62,966 nucleotides of DNA, filler included, from Cercozoa sp. M6MM (GCA_040357565.1; 14 parts of 14 records of this genome joined end to end with filler, not necessarily neighbours in it); one strand, 5' to 3'; positions 5,868 to 28,147 are shown, counted from the first letter of the whole stretch. A program made the numbers and translations. The notes: generated by a model not told the origin, from the letters alone.

Positions 5868-6352
5868 AGAAACTCGAATCCGGCGCGAGCTCGAGAAACC
5901 AATCCGCGGTGGGGGGGGGGCAGGAAACGACCCAAATTCTTGCATTACAGCAAAGCTGGTGGTACTACCATGGCTAAATTTAATTTTCTACAGGGGTTAC
6001 CAACTGAATGAGTGAAGTCAGACGTCCAGTAAAGCAAGTGTTGGACAGGACACAGATCCGCCATCAACCCGGGGATTGGATACGGTGTATATAGCGACGG
6101 ATAGATAATTACTTCAGTCTATTCCGACAAGAGTCTAGGTCGGTGTCTAGAAACGTTAAAGCCATGTGTTATTTGAAATACAGTGCACGCCCCATACGCG
6201 ACGATACTGAACCGAACTGAACTGAAGGAAACTGTGCCAGTACAATTCGGTGTTCGTTCGGGTGTTTGTCGGAGAACCCTTCGTATTTTCACTCGAGTTT
6301 CCCCACCTTGGTCTTGGCAGTTTAAGCGACCAAACAGGCACCGTGAGTGAAG

Positions 6353-7402
6353 ATGAAGATCCTGTTGTCTACGTTGCTGAACCTTTCGATGGCGCGGCAC
6401 CAACTTGCTGAAGGTTAGTTTTTATACCACTGTGTCCCTGTGTACTGTCCTGTAAGTTTGCTGGCAATGACTAACTTATTATAATTTTTTATATTTTAAA
6501 ACTGACTTTTGACTATTTACGACTGTAAATTTACTGTAGCAGCAAGTGTCTATCCTGGAGGGAACACCGATTCCTTGGTCAATGGCGCAGGGGGAATGGC
6601 TTTAAAGTCGCTGATTCATTCAAACGATGAGATCGAACACGATCTACACAGCCTCACTGTCGTACCTAAAAGTTTAAAACTAAGTTAATTTACTTTCCCA
6701 TAAGATACACGCCTTTTTTGCATTGACCGCTGCAGCACATGGCCAAAGCAACCGACCAGTTGAAAGCATCGCTGAAAGAGCTGTGGTTTCGGCTTGGGCG
6801 CGTCGAAAATGTGATTGAAACCTCAACCACAACAACGACCACAGCGACCACGACTTCCAGTGCGACCACGACTTCAAGTGCGACCACGACTTCAAGTGCG
6901 ACCACGACTTCAAGTGCGACCACGACCTCAAGTGCGACCACGACCACGACTACAATGCCGTGTACAACTTGCACGCGCGAAGGCAACGATGTGCTTCCTC
7001 CTCCGGAAACATGTCCTGTGGCAGACATGCTTTCGCGAGGCAACGAATGCGAGTGCGATTTCCAGTGCGCTTCTACAGTCGAGACGCCTGGTACAGTGTC
7101 TGCCTGCATCGATACTTTACTACTTAATCCAAGGAGTGCCTCGGTACTATACAGCGTCTTGTGTTAATTTGAAGCGGCTTGCTCGGAGAACTGCTCCGTG
7201 GTTTTGTTGGATGGCACCGAGGGCACCCCGACAGACTTGCCGAATCGCTGCGTGACCACTGTTCCAGGCGGTGTTCCAGCAGAAGCCACATGTTACTGCA
7301 CCTCTGAGTGTGAGACTGGTTTAACATGCTTTGGCGGAAGCACATTCAACCCGAACACGCCGCGCACGTGCAGATGCAGCAATGAAGACTCTCTGCAATG
7401 CA
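6353..7402 (+). CDS. Secreted Thr/Ser-rich (mucin-like) protein with Cys-rich modules, 3'-truncated
   Basis: Signal-like start MKILLSTLLNLSMA, then (TTTSSA)n, then Cys-rich units (ECECDFQC; CYCTSECETGLTCFGG..CRC). GT-AG introns. Confidence 0.7.
6825..6953 (+). repeat. 18-bp coding tandem repeat (GCGACCACGACTTCAAGT)n encoding ATTTSS
   Basis: About 5 near-perfect units are directly visible. Confidence 0.9.
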
Positions 7403-7468
7403 CGTATTGTTCTCTGTTATTTTTCGTGCTCCAAGCCTTCAACGCACAGCCTTCTTTCCTTGTGCTAT

Positions 7469-7561
<93 letters not shown>

Positions 7562-7661
7562 NNNNNNNNNNNNNNNNNNNNNNNNNNNNNNNNNNNNNNN
7601 NNNNNTTAATTAATTAANNNNNNNNNNNNNNNNNNNNNNNNNNNNNNNNNNNNNNNNNNNN

Positions 7662-7707
<46 letters not shown>

Positions 7708-7719
7708 GGAACGGCAGTG

Positions 7720-10118
7720 CTACTTGAAGGCCGTCTCGAACGGGTCCTGCAGCACGTCGATCTGCTTGATCACAATGCTTTCGAGCGGCCGGTTCTTCTT
7801 GTCCGTCTTGAGGAACTCCATCTGACCAGGGTAAGGGGTGAGGGTAGGGGGTAGGGGGTAGGGATGGTAGGAGGTAGACAGGGGACACACCTTCTCAAGC
7901 ACCTCGGTGCCCTCGATGAGTTCGCCAAAGACAGTGTGCCGATCGTCCAGGTGTTCGGCAGCATCGAAGAGAACAAAGAACTGCGCGCCGTTGGTGTTGG
8001 CGCCGCGATTGGCGTAGGACAGCACGCCGCGGTGCGAGTGGCGCAGCGACTCGTGGAACTCGTCGGCGAACTTGCCGGTCTCGGAGATGCGCGGGTGACA
8101 CCTGCCGCCGGTACCTGGCTACACACACCACAAGTACAAGCACTCTTAACAAAGTACAAAAGCACCCTTAACAAAGTACAAAAGCACCCTTAACAAGGTA
8201 CAAGCTGACAGTACCTGCGATTGGTTATCACCGCCATTGACAAGGTAATCCGTGTCGCCGCCTTGCGCCATGAAGCCCGGGATCAGTCGGTGGATCGTTG
8301 TGTTCGTATAGACGCCTGCTCAGTGACACACGTGCTCAGTCATACGTGCTCAGTCATACGTGCTTAGTCATACGTGCTCAGTGACACACGTGTTCAGTGG
8401 CACACGTGCCAAGTGTGGTACCTTCGGCAGCCAGCAGGAGGAAGTTGTGCACAGCACGCGGCACGAGGTCGCTGTGCAGTTCGAACACCATCTGACCCAC
8501 CGACGTCACCAGTCGCACGTAGGCCTTGTCGCCGACCTTGCCACCTACGTGCGACTCAACTCAAACTTACGGGGGCGGGGGGGGGGGCCAGGAGTAAATC
8601 CTACCATGGCGACGATCGCGCTTGCGTGTGCGTCGCAGACGCAGGTACAAACGCTCGTCAATCTCACGTTGCGATAGCTCTCTCTGCAGGGGAATAACGA
8701 TAAGGGTAAGGATAAGGGGCAGGGTAAGAGTAAGGAGCAGGGGAGGGTAAGAGGAAGGGTAAGGGTAAGTAAGGGTAAGGGCAAGGGTAAGGGCAAGGGA
8801 AGGGCAAAGGCAAAGGCAAGGGTAAGGGCAAGGGCAAGGGTAAGGGTAAGCAAGGCAAGGGCAAGGGCAAGGAAAAGGGTAAACGGACTCGTTTCTGCTG
8901 CGTGACGGCAGCCATGCTGGTGCTCGTGAAGCCTGCGCCGAGTTTCGACGTCGAATCGGCGGCCAGGAACTTCACGCGGCCGTCGTCTTGATCACTCTTC
9001 TCGGCTTCGGCCTGCTTGGCCAACTCTCGGCGACGCTTCTCGTCTTGCAGCAACTTGAGTCGCTGTCACAAACGACATATCAACTTTGGAGAACAACAGC
9101 CATGTTGCTTACCTTTCTGGCACGCATAGCCTCGATGACTTCTTCGTTCAGTTCGGCACTGCGAGAATGCAAGGCACAAGGTATAAGAACAAAGTATCGT
9201 CGCACTGAACATGAGGTACTCGTGCTCGCCAACAATGCCGACGCCGTGCTTCTGCTGCCACTCGGGGTCCTGTGGATCCTGCAGCACCAGGATACACTTC
9301 TTCGTCACCGGCGCACCTGTCAACGGCTCTCGCAGCGTGCCTTTCTGCAAAGCCAAAACAAGAAAACTCAGCTTCAGTCAAAATTAAAAAGCTACAAAAA
9401 CTTGAGAAGTTGTTTTGAAAGCTTTGCACACACAGATGATACCTGGTCCGAGAACAACTCTAGCACGGCAGAGTACGAGTAGCAGTGCGCCGAGGCAGCG
9501 CCTTCTGGCACAACGGCACAGATGCGCGCGTGCTCCGAGAAGAGCTGCAGGCTCAGCGGACAGTGAAGCTGTCCGTTCGCATTGCGGTGCACTTTCAGCG
9601 TGATCTAAACCGAAAAAGCAACAATCAATTCCACAACCAATCAATTCAACGTCAATTCTGGACGGAAAGTCGGGATATGTTCCAAAACGCACCAAATCGC
9701 GAGGACGCAGCTTTTGCGACGGCTTTTTCGGGTGCTTGTCGCTGTTGCCTGCCTCGGCCTGCCACTCGAGCAGCGCATCGCGGTCGAAAATGTAACCTAC
9801 AAACACCCAACATTTTGAGAAACTTAAATTAAGCAAAGCCAAACAGCCACACACACACCATCGGGAGACGCAACGGGCTCCTTCCACGGTTGCAGCGACA
9901 ATTGACAGTGATCAAACGGCAGCACCTGGGTCAAACAAGAGCATCCGCGCGGAGGTTAATTACAAACCACTCAAAATAAAGTGGATTAGCTTCGAGAAAA
10001 ACCCAAAAAGGAGTACCGAGTGCAGCGTTCGCTCGCGCTTGGTTTGTTTACCTCCTCCGTGCTCTCTCCATTCCTTACTCGAGTAGAACAACTTGCGGCT
10101 ACTGCGCTTCTTGCCCAT
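7720..10118 (-). CDS. PPIL2: U-box/RING-type cyclophilin PPIL2 (CYC4)
   Basis: N-terminus MGKKR...LPFDHCQLSLQP..YIFD, HCPLSLQLF..YSYSAV and EPLTG..LQDP. C-terminal cyclophilin domain: HNFLLLA, HRLIPGFMAQGGD, FADEF, GVLSYANRGANTNGAQFF, HLDDRHTVFG. Confidence 0.93.
8701..8882 (+). repeat. Intronic telomere-like (TAAGGG/CAAGGG)n tract
   Basis: About 28 hexamer units inside a PPIL2 intron; C-rich on the sense strand. Confidence 0.9.
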
Positions 10119-10362
10119 GTTAAGTACTTGCGCACAACGCCACGCCACTCGCAGGAGTCGTAAGGCGCTCGACACGAGAGACTCTCGGCTCTCAACAAGT
10201 TGAGCCGAATTCAAGGAAGTCAAGCATTTGCAACGCAGAAAGAGCTCTATCCACTCAACTAGAGCACTACTTCAGAAAAGAAAGCGATCTAGAGAGGTTT
10301 CTTTGAGAGCTCTGCATTTGCCATTCCGATTTTGGCCAATCACGGTTGAAGAAGCACAGAGG

Positions 10363-11028
10363 ATGATCGTGCGCATTCGCACGTCGCGCGGCGCGAAGCG
10401 TTTCACGCTGCCGGAGAACGCGACGATGCACCAACTGCAAAAAGAGATCGAGAAAGCTTACAAGTACGTCAATCTGCATGCGTGATTGGTCTGTATGACA
10501 GGGTGTGGTGCCATCTCAGTATGACGCCGGACAACCAGATCCTGTCGCGAACCCCATGGTCCAATCCCGACGTGATGGAGTTTTCGCCGAGTCAGTCACT
10601 TGTATGCCCAGTCTTTCCTTTTGTCTTCCTTTGCCCAATAACTCGGACCAAAAAAAAACGAACCCTCAATCGAAACCAGGCCAGTCTCGGTGTGAAGCAC
10701 GGCGACCTGCTGCACTTGCTGCTGGACAATCGCGCACTTCCGCGCGGACTCACCTTTGGAAAGCCGGTATATGTGTGCCCTTTGTGTGGGACTGTTGTGA
10801 CTGTTGAGTAAGAGCGAGAAAGTCATCTGCGTGTGTGAAAGCAGAAGGAGCAGGATGAGAAGGAGCAGGAAGAGGAGGAGCAGGCCAAGGCCGAGCAGGG
10901 GAGTCAGAACAAGGGACCCAAGTTCTTGCCTTACGTGCGTTGGATGGCACGGCGACAACAGGCGTGTCACTGTCTTCGCAATGACGAGTTCTGCCCGGTA
11001 CACCTCACTCACTTCTCTCACACACTCA

Positions 11029-11085
<57 letters not shown>

Positions 11086-11311
11086 CGTTTCCTCTCCTTT
11101 ACCCTTACCCCATGAAGGCATGTCTGCCGCCAGAGCTGCCGAGTTACCAACCCAAGGCAGGCTTTGGTCACTTAGGTACCCTCTTGTGTTACCCTGTTAA
11201 TCTGAATCTTAGTTTAATCTGGACTGACAGGACGTTTTTCGTTGGCGCAGATGCCGCCAAACGCCGTGCTGGCTCTGCAGGAGTACCGTCATTTGGACAA
11301 CCTATCGTTTG
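10363..11311 (+). CDS. NPL4: NPL4-like protein, N-terminal ubiquitin-like and Zn-binding region, 3'-truncated
   Basis: MIVRIRTSRGAKRFTL...SLGVKHGDLLHL matches the NPL4 N-terminal UBL pattern, followed by CHC...C..CLP. Confidence 0.75.
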
Positions 11312-11458
11312 GTATGTCCTTTTCAGCCCCCCCCCCCCCNNNNNNNNNNNNNNNNNNNNNNNNNNNNNNNNNNNNNNNNNNNNTTAATTAATTAANNNNN
11401 NNNNNNNNNNNNNNNNNNNNNNNNNNNNNNNNNNNNNNNTTTTTTTGAAACTCCCCAG

Positions 11459-12677
11459 TTCGATGTGCCTGCGTTCCCTTGGATCACATCGATGTTTCCG
11501 ACTGACGACTCAGCCGAGGCGGCACACGAGGCCTTGGCGTCGCTCGAGCGTGTTCTTGCACTCCGTGCGCATGAGATCGCTGCGGTCATTGTGGAACCTA
11601 TCCAGGCCGAAGGGGGTGACCGACACGCATCGCCCGAGTTTTTTCGCGGTGCGTTTCCCCTTTCCCCTCCCCCTTGATTTCCTTAAACCCTACTTAGGTG
11701 TTCGCTCACTATCCGAGAAGTACGGAGTGCTCATGATTGTCGACGAAGTTCAAACTGGCGGTGGTGTCACTGGAACACTCTGGGCACATGAGCAGTAAGT
11801 TTATGCCCTCCCCTCCTTTCCCTTCCTTCCTCCGGAGGGTAAACACAAACCATATGTTTATGTTTGGATACATGAACAGGTGGGACCTCGAGACACCGCC
11901 CGACATGGTAACCTTCAGCAAGCGTCTGCAGCTGGCAGGTTTCTTCGCGCGCGAGGATCTCCGTGCTCCCCAACCGGTACAAAGGACAGTCTGCTCACCC
12001 ATATTGATTGAAAGATGAACCTAAATTTTACTGTCCTCATTGAATAACAGTACCGCAACTTCAACACGTGGCTCGGCTCGCCGATTGCGTTGCTTCAAGC
12101 CAATACGATTGTCGATACCATCAACAAGGACAAGCTACTCCAGAATGTCCAGCATGTGGGTAAGCTACTCCAGAATGTCCAGCGTGTGGGCTCTGCTAGC
12201 GAACTAATACTTGGATGGGCAGCACCCAAGCTGATGCGAGGCGTCAAAGAAGCCGCCGAAGCAAGTAACGGACAGATCACCAACGTGCGAAACCGCGGCT
12301 TTGTAAATTACCGCTTCTTTGAGTCATCTGAGATGGTGGATTGTGCTCAGTTTGGTGCCTTCGATCTCCCGAGTCCCGAGCAGCGCGACTACGTGCTGCA
12401 GCAGTTAGCGACACGGCGGGTGGCGTGCGGTGCCTGTGGCGACCGTTCTGTTCGGTACACCATCGATACACATCCGAATTGATGCAACTTCAGTTTCTGG
12501 GTGACGTTCGCTTTCTGGTGCAGCCTCCGTCCTGCGCTTGTTCTTGGCGAGAACGAAGCCGATGAGTTTGCCAATGCGCTGAAGGACGGGAACCCACCCC
12601 TTTCGGGCGGCCCAATTTTTGAGCCGAAAACCTTGATCCAAAAAATAGATTTTGTTTGGTCAGCACAACTAAGATAG
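11459..12677 (+). CDS. ABAT: 4-aminobutyrate aminotransferase (class III PLP-dependent), C-terminal half
   Basis: Motifs: IAAVIVEPIQAEGGDRHAS..FF; MIVDEVQTGGGVTG..WAHE; PPDMVTFSK (PLP lysine); YRNFNTWLG; CGDRSVRLRPAL. Confidence 0.93.
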
Positions 12678-13080
12678 CAGGTTTTATTTGTAGAGGCATT
12701 GTGCCTAAGTTACTGTGAGTTGCGGAGCGTTAAAATAAGCGCGATCGGCCTGGTGTGCGTTAAAATATCTTGATTCTTTATGAGTGGCAAGCCAGAAGCG
12801 ATCAAAACGCCTGAAGAGGCACTGGAGGCGCTGTATTCTGCGCGTGCGGCAACGCAATAATCGAAACTCAGCACCAAAACCCTGCTGACTGCGATACAGG
12901 TAAAATAACAAGTAACAACNNNNNNNNNNNNNNNNNNNNNNNNNNNNNNNNNNNNNNNNNNNNTTAATTAATTAANNNNNNNNNNNNNNNNNNNNNNNNN
13001 NNNNNNNNNNNNNNNNNNNTTGTAGGCACAGTGACACACAGACACACACACACAGACAGACGGACACACAAACAGGATAC

Positions 13081-24251
<11,171 letters not shown>

Positions 24252-25566: not shown

Positions 25567-26408
25567 TCACACTCGCCGAGGTCAAGCGACTGGTGCGCAG
25601 CTGTGACACGAGCGAGCTGCGCGAGGCCGAGTTCGCCTTGGCGTGCGCACTACTCTGGGACATCTGCGGGCGAGCAGGCGCCATCTTTGGCGGCTCGCGG
25701 AAGCGCAAGATGCAGTTCAGAGACTTGACGCCTCACGGTGTGGACAAGTACCGGGTGAACATTCCCACTCCCAAAGCGAGGACCAAAGATGTGGCCGCCA
25801 TCCGATCGCGCCGCTCAGACGGTCTGGACGTGCCGAGCCTGCTCCAGCAGGTGTACACGATCCACAAGAAGGCCGGCACCTTCCACAACGACATGCCCAT
25901 TGTCTCGATGTCGTACATCGACATGCAGAGCGAGCTCAAGAAGCGATGCAAGAAGCTTGGCATCAAGGCACGGAACGGGCGGCGCATTGGCACGCACGGC
26001 TTCCGTCGCGGCAAGGCCACGCACCTGCACGCCTTGGGTGTGCGAGTGAGCGACATCATGCTGCTCGGCCGCTGGAGGTCCACGGCCTGTCTGCGCTACT
26101 TGGACCTGACATTGCAGGTGCGAGGCACGCGATCCTCAGTTCCGACTACTGAGCATCAGTCACTTACTAGCATCCAACCAGTCTGCCATAGGGCCACACG
26201 AAGCACAAGTATTATAGTGAACCGACGGAAGGAGCAACAGAACACTTGGCACACGTATCTCGGCATCGCGCCCATCACCGCCACGGCAGGCACAAGGCCT
26301 CGGGCACACTGGGTGGCCGCCAGGGAAGGGAACAGCCAGGCCTGGCGACCAACCCCGATCTGGGCCCGCCGCCTCGAAGAGATCAGTGGTGGGGCCCTTT
26401 CAGACTAG
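25567..26408 (+). mobile_element. Tyrosine recombinase catalytic domain of a DIRS/Ngaro/Crypton-type element (C-terminal half, starts at contig edge)
   Basis: Catalytic residues: R (ICGRAG), K (TPKART), HxxR (THGFRRGKAT), GRW and Y (GRWRSTACLRYL). The GRWxS..RY form is typical of eukaryotic YR elements. No introns in the domain. Confidence 0.9.
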
Positions 26409-26579
26409 CAAGGACTCCGCCAACGCCTGCACTCAACTACGGGAACGTTCTGCGAGTGGACTGTCCGACGCCAGGCCTGGTGTTACCCAATTGGCGTTGG
26501 CGACCTGCAACTGCCTGCCAGTGGCAGGACAGTTGGCTGTTACAGGCCCGCACGACCTTTCGGTGCGGTGGTGTGACCC
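26302..26579 (+). ncRNA. Putative structured RNA/ssDNA element downstream of the recombinase domain
   Basis: Complementary segments read by eye: 26328-26347/26469-26488, 26362-26372/26386-26397, 26418-26427/26493-26502, 26508-26520/26522-26535, 26548-26553/26563-26568, 26302-26309/26571-26579. Confidence 0.5.
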
Positions 26580-27040
26580 TCCAGTGATAACCTGAGTAAG
26601 AGATGATCAGCAAACCATAAGATACAGAAAATACAAAATTGAATATACAGATAGTATATTTCGATAAGCTAAGCTAAGCTTGTGTTGTGCACTTTTCGCG
26701 CTGTGCTCAGGGGTGAACTGAGCTCCCTGCTGTTGCTTGTTCCGCCGTGCGGTCTCGACGAGACTTGCACACAGGCGTTGTTGGGGTAATTACCGGCGGT
26801 GCGGGTTCGCGAAAAGTGTAAGGGCGCGCGAAGCGCGCGTGTGACATACCTGTGGCATCTCTTGAGTAGTGCTCCGGTGTTCACAGGTCTCTCAACACAA
26901 AGAAAAGTGAAGTGTGATTTTTGTTGTATGTTTTGTCACTCCGGCGCTCCTTCCGCATTTTTGCAAATTGCAATTGCAGATCTGATCGATCGGTTCTAGC
27001 TTTCTGTTTTGACTCAGAGATCGCTGATCGCGTCCAGGCC

Positions 27041-27185
27041 GAGTGATCGCTTTGCTTGATCACTGATTGGTTCCTGATCGCAGTGATCGCTTTGATTGAT
27101 CGCTGATTGGTTCCTGATCACAGTGATCGCTATGCTCGATCACTGATTGGTTCCTGATCGCGGTGGTCACTTTGATCGATCAGTG
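27041..27185. repeat. 40-bp tandem repeat x~3.5, each full unit containing CTGATTGG (CCAAT box)
   Basis: Units start at 27041, 27081, 27121 and 27161 (consensus cagtgatcgctttgcttgatcactgattggttcctgatcg). Confidence 0.9.
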
Positions 27186-27190
27186 ACCAT

Positions 27191-27248
27191 GACGGTTTGA
27201 GACGGTCTGCTGAACCGATCTACGGTTAGAGACGGTTGGAGACGGTTT
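27191..27248. repeat. GACGGTT motif repeated in 10-bp phase
   Basis: Copies at 27191, 27201, 27221, 27231 and 27241. Confidence 0.85.
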
Positions 27249-27382
27249 AATCGTTTTCAAGAATCACTTCGGGATCATTTGGGATTATTTTTGGTGATTT
27301 TGGTTTTGTTCTTTTGTTCTCGTACTCCCACTCTCTGTTTCGCTCGTCCGACCGCAGAATGTTGATTCTCACATTCCTACCA

Positions 27383-27724
27383 ACGGGTGCGCCTGTGTCT
27401 CGTCTCCCGGGCAGATTCTCTGTGCTCCGGCCAAGCAAGACCTCGTCGATGATCTCGCTGCGCTGCACTGGGATGGGATGCCTCGGTTGCGCAGGTCCGA
27501 GCATTCTTGATGGTGCCTGCCGACACGACCATGGTGCGGTCGGCGAGGAACTCTCCCGCGTCGTACTCGCGCACTTGTTCGAGTCTCACCTGGTTGTCTG
27601 TGCACCAGCCGTGGAATGCCTTGACCGATGTGGCGTAGGACTTGCGTGTGCTCGGCTTGACCCTCTCGAGTCTCACCGTGGCGAGGTACTTGCTCGTCGC
27701 TCTCGCTCGCCAGGAGTTCTCCAT
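27383..27724 (-). pseudogene. N-terminal (core-binding, SAM-like) half of a tyrosine recombinase; frameshifted and interrupted
   Basis: VKPSTRKSYATSVKAFHGWC...AGEFLAD...SAGTIKNAR is an integrase N-terminal pattern. After a frame change it reads PVQRSEIIDEVLLG...PGRRDTGAPV, then composition changes abruptly. Confidence 0.8.
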
Positions 27725-28147
27725 GCGGTAGTACGAAACGCAGCGGTCGACTGGAGCCGCTCCACTTGTCCTGCTCGTACATGGATGTATGTATGTGTGA
27801 GTGTCAGGACGTGCGTGATCTGCAAGGATGGGCGGTCCAGAAATTTCAAATAGTTAAAATCTCGTCTAAAAACCGAAACAGCTCCTTGGTTGCCTTTAGT
27901 TGCGTCTGTTGCAAAGTTCGATGAGTTGCGCAGCCTGCGCCAAAACTGATTGTTCTCAACCCTGCGGGGGCACATCGGCTCGTCTCGCAGCGGCATGCTT
28001 TTGTCGCGTGCACTTCGCACGGCTGCCGCCTTGTTCTCGGCGCGGCCNNNNNNNNNNNNNNNNNNNNNNNNNNNNNNNNNNNNNNNNNNNNTTAATTAAT
28101 TAANNNNNNNNNNNNNNNNNNNNNNNNNNNNNNNNNNNNNNNNNNNN

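Follow-up and report, generated by a model that had tools for sequence, protein, structure and literature searches.

A tyrosine recombinase (YR) gene lies in two convergent halves in the genome of Cercozoa sp. M6MM, and the split is most likely the commonplace debris of nested transposons, in a copy that is dead, not a genetic switch. Intact copies of the gene were found in the same organism, the two halves abut exactly when read against them, and the N-terminal half has decayed. From the sequence, it appears probable that a younger copy of the element stands in antisense orientation next to or within an older, dead copy, with the YR gene of the latter interrupted in codon 135. Two members of a single small Crypton-like (YR-only) family would then lie tail to middle in opposite orientation. 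The younger copy (25567–27381), made up of the YR catalytic half and a 1.2-kb 3′ region, would adjoin an older copy whose gene was broken where the core-binding domain gives way to the catalytic domain. In the simplest history, the younger copy, whole or in part, would have inserted antisense into the YR gene of the older one. The two halves would come from different copies, the remainder of the old copy would lie beyond the young one, and the younger copy would have arrived by transposition rather than by capture of a fragment.

The window is the whole stretch of DNA that was analyzed (62,966 nucleotides, filler included), and the split gene occupies a 2.48-kb piece of it (25567–28047), in which the catalytic half on the plus strand is followed by 1.2 kb of noncoding DNA and then, on the minus strand, by the SAM-like half with 265 nt upstream of it. 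The source organism is a marine amoeba, now named Lemnamoeba sinaloensis (PMC13746701), whose draft genome was assembled from 10x Chromium reads by Supernova and ARBitR (PMC11069148; PMC13746701). This draft assembly is stated to be fragmented, and simple-sequence repeats are reported as unusually abundant in it (PMC13746701). Both halves were measured against P0070, an intact homologue that occurs naturally, and broken frames were searched piece by piece. Evidence from the sequencing runs (X1, X2, X3, and X5, of which X2 is a gut metagenome from a different study) was drawn from Logan contigs, each with a single depth figure; summed depths are noisy, and contig depth is a rough measure that is unsafe for ranking gene parts.

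Position and fit of the two gene halves

P0070 is an intact, full-length, 331-aa tyrosine recombinase of M6MM, encoded on a 2938-bp contig and 98% identical to the C-terminal half in the piece. In a tblastn search, its residues 136–331 aligned with positions 25569–26156 on the plus strand (E 9e-130), and the catalytic half (25567–26156, plus strand, part of residue 135 and residues 136–331) opens at the first bases of the piece, as had been read from the sequence. Residues 1–134 aligned with positions 27782–27384 on the minus strand (E 2e-47), and the Pfam domain Phage_int_SAM_4 was detected there (E 9e-6, compared with 3.5e-7 in P0070). This agrees with the earlier placing of the N-terminal half on the minus strand up to 27384/27383 and identifies 27384–27782 as a SAM-like core-binding YR half, now a pseudogene. 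The old copy's upstream region (27783–28047, minus strand), which has no Pfam domain, is cut by the end of the piece; one X2 contig extends 123 nt past 28047.

The junction is at 27382–27383, where AA on the plus strand corresponds to TT on the minus strand. The T at 27383 belongs to the old N-half, and the T at 27382, which equals the T at 25567, can be assigned to either side. Codon F135 (TTC) of P0070 is split into T (27383) and TC (25567–25568), without a gap or an overlap. At 95–98% identity to P0070, the two halves fall in the same clade, so that an alignment with this homologue revealed neither a missing or doubled stretch at the junction nor halves of different families. The natural join, CCCGTT/CACACTC, translated AHP-F-TLAEV, is present in P0070, in a second annotated relative (P0002), and in two X1 contigs, which carry CTCGGCGAGTGTG directly before 27382, that is, the reverse complement of 25568–25580.

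The sequence-only reading had claimed that the convergent halves rejoin exactly in frame; the exact, gapless split held in the tblastn comparison with P0070, but the details of the join did not. The proposed end of the N-half, RRDTGAP, is out of frame and is a product of a 4-nt duplication at 27432–27439, the true frame being ICPGDETQAHP. The proposed join, GAP/VTLAEV, contains one T where the natural junction, in P0070 as in the X1 contigs, has two, and it is in frame only through the dropped T. A flipped segment would end at 27382 or 27381, one T being ambiguous, and not at 27383. The placing of the break at the opening of the catalytic domain was borne out, since it aligns to Cre F137, a residue that, counted along the Cre sequence, lies just after the interdomain linker.

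At 27381/27382, the microhomology amounts to 0–1 nt, and the flank showed no similarity to the intact site beyond 1–2 nt. There was no inverted-repeat recombination site at the one visible boundary and no pair of arms centered on the break.

Decay and copy number of the halves

The N-half carries four frame-breaking indels in 399 nt, where the sequence-only reading had seen the broken frame correctly but counted a single frameshift, near 27490. These lesions are a 4-nt insertion at 27731–27734, a replacement of 21 nt by 5 nt at 27498–27502, a 5-nt tandem duplication at 27470–27479, and a 4-nt tandem duplication at 27432–27439; in addition, 6 of 127 amino acids differ from those of P0070. By its sequence, a copy with four such frameshifts is predicted to be unable to make recombinase. 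The N-half contigs of X2 contain the indels at 27498–27502 and 27731–27734 and match the piece with 0 gaps and 2–3 mismatches, and the decayed N-half is thus a real, old allele, because a run from another study carries both indels. We interpret the N-half (27384–27782) as belonging to the older copy.

The catalytic half contains, in order, R (CGRAG), K (TPKAR), HGFRRG, GRWRS, and the catalytic Y (LRYLD), and up to LRYLD, 176 of 180 amino acids are identical to those of P0070 (four changes). The single indel in its 588 nt is a 7-nt deletion at about 26106 (26103–26110, between GAC repeats), 3′ of the catalytic Tyr codon. The frame shifts there, with the true stop codon, tga, lying in another frame at 26150–26152, and the deletion costs a conserved 17-aa C-terminal tail, EDADIAGARHAILSSDY, which is kept in P0070 and in the 70%-identical P0002. 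We interpret the catalytic half (25567–26156) as part of the younger copy, which may itself be impaired through the loss of this tail. The excess of lesions in the N-half over the C-half gave a pooled binomial p value of 0.03 (indels alone, p = 0.09; amino acid changes alone, p = 0.33). The asymmetry of decay is modest and is suggestive of halves of different age.

Contig depths in X1 were compared for the two halves. The exact N-half version of the piece was present in two contigs at depths of 1252 and 1465, and N-half versions without its two 4-nt insertions were present at 2140 and 3100. The exact C-half version had a depth of 2803, and this value of about twofold comes from one 98-nt contig (25653–25750). 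Exact matches thus stand at about 1x for the N-half and, for one C-half contig, at about 2x. A distinct, decayed C-half variant was found at 1296–1365. It carries tandem 4-nt duplications, CGCA after 25645 and GGGA after 25656, which are the same type of lesion as in the old N-half. At about 1300 per locus, the depths can be read as one old and two young loci for each half, which is what insertion of a young copy into an old one, together with a separate P0070 locus, predicts. The earlier model of an antisense insertion into a sister copy, with a break introduced by the assembler, therefore fits the unequal decay, the depths of about 1x and 2x, and the decayed C-half variant at about 1x.

A one-off, non-programmed inversion in a single copy was weighed against these data. 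The DNA would have broken in codon 135 and again where the 3′ region ends, to be rejoined in inverted orientation, and the gene, killed by this event, would then have decayed. An inversion would leave exactly the local structure observed, 0–1 nt of microhomology is as in end joining, and the C-half has one frameshift as well. However, in a single copy, neither an N-half more decayed than the C-half nor one exact C-half contig about twice as deep as the N-half version would be expected, and the decayed single-depth C-half would call for a further odd copy that combines a clean N-half with a decayed C-half. We regard such an inversion as unlikely.

Two further features of the variation among copies were observed. 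The decay of the old copy consists mainly of 4–5-nt tandem duplications, namely CAAG and GGGAT in the piece (27432–27439 and 27470–27479) and CGCA and GGGA in the X1 variants (25645 and 25656), and a slippage-prone background may have been at work in the old copy, given the repeat-rich draft genome (PMC13746701). In the X1 variant contigs over 25629–26209, 9 of the 15 positions that vary between copies are G>A on the plus strand, a strand-biased set of transitions.

The contig start and the junction in the assembly

The contig begins at the very base that matches the break, and this start can be explained by the arrangement itself. In an intact copy, the sequence to the left of the 25567 equivalent is the end of the N-half, that is, the reverse complement of 27382–27431; this stretch encodes 16 amino acids identical to those of P0070 and contains none of the X1 variants listed. 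The younger copy would run on to the left of 25567 into its own N-half, and the last 50 nt of that N-half would be the reverse complement of 27382–27431. The assembler would stop at 25567 because 50 nt of inverted homology form the same de Bruijn nodes, on which the path folds back. In general, if the 3′ end of a full copy lies antisense to a sister copy truncated at a given point, the contig begins at that point. The exact rejoining is accordingly a by-product of arrangement and assembly and is not independent evidence for inversion. This calls for caution with similar finds, since a short-read contig of a repeat that lies antisense to a truncated sister starts at the truncation and mimics a perfect "flip and rejoin."

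It is improbable that the junction itself is a Supernova/ARBitR artefact within a repeat family, such that the 3′ region does not in fact end next to the old N-half in the genome. The family is repeated, X1 contains only 69% of the piece's sampled words (Logan contigs), and no junction-spanning contig is among the X1 matches listed, all in keeping with an error in a fragmented draft (PMC13746701). The two sides, however, share only 1–2 nt, too little for a walk along shared k-mers; because such sharing cannot create a join, the k-mers of the junction must have existed in the reads. In addition, the X1 contigs of the old N-half end at 27387, close to the junction, as expected of a sequence with two left contexts.

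Sequences resembling the piece were also found in other runs. X2, X3, and X5, which are labeled gut, marine, and wastewater metagenome and come from three other studies, contain stretches of 70–183 nt that are 95–100% identical to the piece at a depth of 2–3 and fall in 26120–26191, 26235–26394, 26849–27187, and 27477–28047. These matches suggest either that the amoeba or close relatives live in varied habitats or that there was carry-over between samples.

The recombinase family and its relation to known elements

The protein has the marks of the tyrosine recombinase superfamily, in which, judged from the sequence, we place it: a SAM-like domain precedes the catalytic domain, and the catalytic R, K, H-x-x-R, W, and Y follow in the usual order. 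R170, K204, H278, R281, W304, and Y312 are invariant in a 9-protein alignment (A1), and all six are present in the C-half of the piece. The Phage_integrase domain was found in the C-half and its relatives, and the family profile matches Cre over both domains (E 1.4e-8). P0002, annotated in Cercozoa sp. M6MM on a 16.8-kb contig, is 70% identical to the catalytic half. Among the 5.8 billion proteins searched, the family members were only P0070, P0002, and P0001, the ORF of the piece itself, which lies on a 2481-bp NCBI contig, and a metagenome scan with the P0070/P0002 alignment, in which 143 patterns matched, returned no relatives. A JGI contig (Ga0255058_10026147; L001) retrieved in a metagenome scan with a 19-mer from the end of the 3′ region was rejected as a chance match, not a relative; it shares a 20-nt exact match (1610–1629 against 27362–27381 in the piece) and nothing else.

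The noncoding 3′ region of the younger copy (26157–27381, plus strand) adjoins the old N-half with its last base. Seven ORFs in the noncoding parts (26157–27381 and 27783–28047) yielded no Pfam domains, and Rfam and tRNA scans of the piece found nothing except a chance miRNA match. At about 26400–26980, the summed contig depth in X1, noisy as such sums are, was 40,000–170,000, compared with about 6,000–16,000 over the YR parts. This segment is a far commoner sub-repeat; it may be a separate high-copy element that has nested in the 3′ region, or else a non-autonomous derivative. At 27042–27186, a 40-bp unit is repeated in tandem 3.6 times, flanked by partial units at 27019–27035 and up to about 27190. 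Three of its four units contain a perfect inverted repeat of 7–9 bp at a spacing of 7–10 bp (for example, AGTGATCG-7 nt-CGATCACT), and the fourth has one mismatch; arms and spacing together match a YR core site in geometry. In three units, a CCAAT box is present in inverted form (CTGATTGG). These motifs are candidates for binding of the recombinase or for promoter function in the family.

The 3′ region also differs among copies in X1, with presence/absence variants at 26472–26774 and 26976–27353. One contig skips from 26471 to about 26775. In another, whose depth is 1541, position 26975 is followed directly by 27354, without the tandem array. A third departs from the piece at 27318, and 27381 may accordingly not be where copies of the family naturally end.

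The closest likeness is to Cryptons, YR-only DNA transposons that typically have 4–6-bp terminal direct repeats (PMC3212892). The sole coding capacity seen is a YR of about 330 aa, no terminal inverted or long direct repeats were seen within the piece, and the noncoding part is commoner than the gene, as in non-autonomous Crypton derivatives (PMC3212892). Unlike some Crypton groups, the family protein lacks the additional GCR1_C and DUF3504 domains, and 0–1 nt is shared at the junction, in contrast to the usual 4–6-bp repeats (PMC3212892). The element would work like a Crypton and may be one, in a comparison that covers the gene and its flanks within the piece. With Cre and XerC/XerD, it shares the two-domain architecture and the catalytic R-K-H-R-W-Y set, but here these belong to a repeated, decaying eukaryotic gene family and not to a phage or chromosomal resolvase.

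DIRS-1 of Dictyostelium preferentially targets its own copies (PMC5633606), and the insertion proposed here would likewise be into a copy of the same element; it is one event only, so no preference can be claimed. Pfam searches found no RT, RNase H, or MT in the 2.48-kb piece, which is incomplete and ends at 28047. The piece contains no ITR/ICR and no split direct repeats either, the longest inverted repeat being 16 nt and the only direct repeats being those of the 40-bp array. These observations bear on a reading in which the two sides of the junction are long inverted arms, either inverted terminal repeats of the DIRS type, with the first 134 YR codons inside them, or an inverted duplication of the 5′ part by template switching. 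We hold this to be quite unlikely: the topology (arm, 1.8-kb spacer, inverted arm) would be the same, and DIRS elements possess inverted terminal repeats (PMC13465315), but like arms predict an arm deeper than the spacer, and the opposite was seen. Depths of about 1x for the decayed arm, about 2x for undecayed N-halves, and a total of about 3x for C-halves indicate that the arm is not in every copy, and RT, RNase H, and an internal complementary region are all absent from the piece.

It is very unlikely that the recombinase cut its own gene at the domain-boundary codon, whether by inversion of the 3′ part or by a site-preferring self-insertion, of which this copy would survive as a decayed remnant. 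Bacterial invertible switches such as Fim and the shufflon, in which a YR inverts a segment, depend on a functional recombinase and on inverted sites in pairs. Neither is seen here, with one boundary visible and the N-half frameshifted, and a programmed, reversible inversion of the 3′ part as an on/off switch, the other model of the sequence-only reading, is very unlikely: the break does lie at a domain boundary and intact and rearranged junctions do occur in one organism, but the N-half is a pseudogene whose four frameshifts leave this copy without recombinase, the intact junctions are accounted for by other copies (P0070), the flank of 27381/27382 is unlike the intact site beyond 1–2 nt and has no inverted arms around the break, and the two halves seem to be of unequal age. 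In SSV1-type integration by archaeal viruses, the halves of the integrase gene are in direct orientation, one at each end of the element; a two-part recombinase gene is common to both cases, but the halves here are on opposite strands and converge, for which reason this type of partition was set aside, as was a 2-micron/ITR reading.

The words DIRS, Crypton, and tyrosine recombinase are absent from the main text of the L. sinaloensis chromosome-level genome paper (PMC13746701). As nested copies of one element, the split gene matters little alone; what it adds is a small YR-only (Crypton-like) family, apparently not described before, in this rhizarian amoeba. A site-preferring self-insertion, if true, would disable resident copies and so amount to self-limitation of copy number, and repeated hits on this codon among other copies would be a sign that a eukaryotic YR element targets itself.
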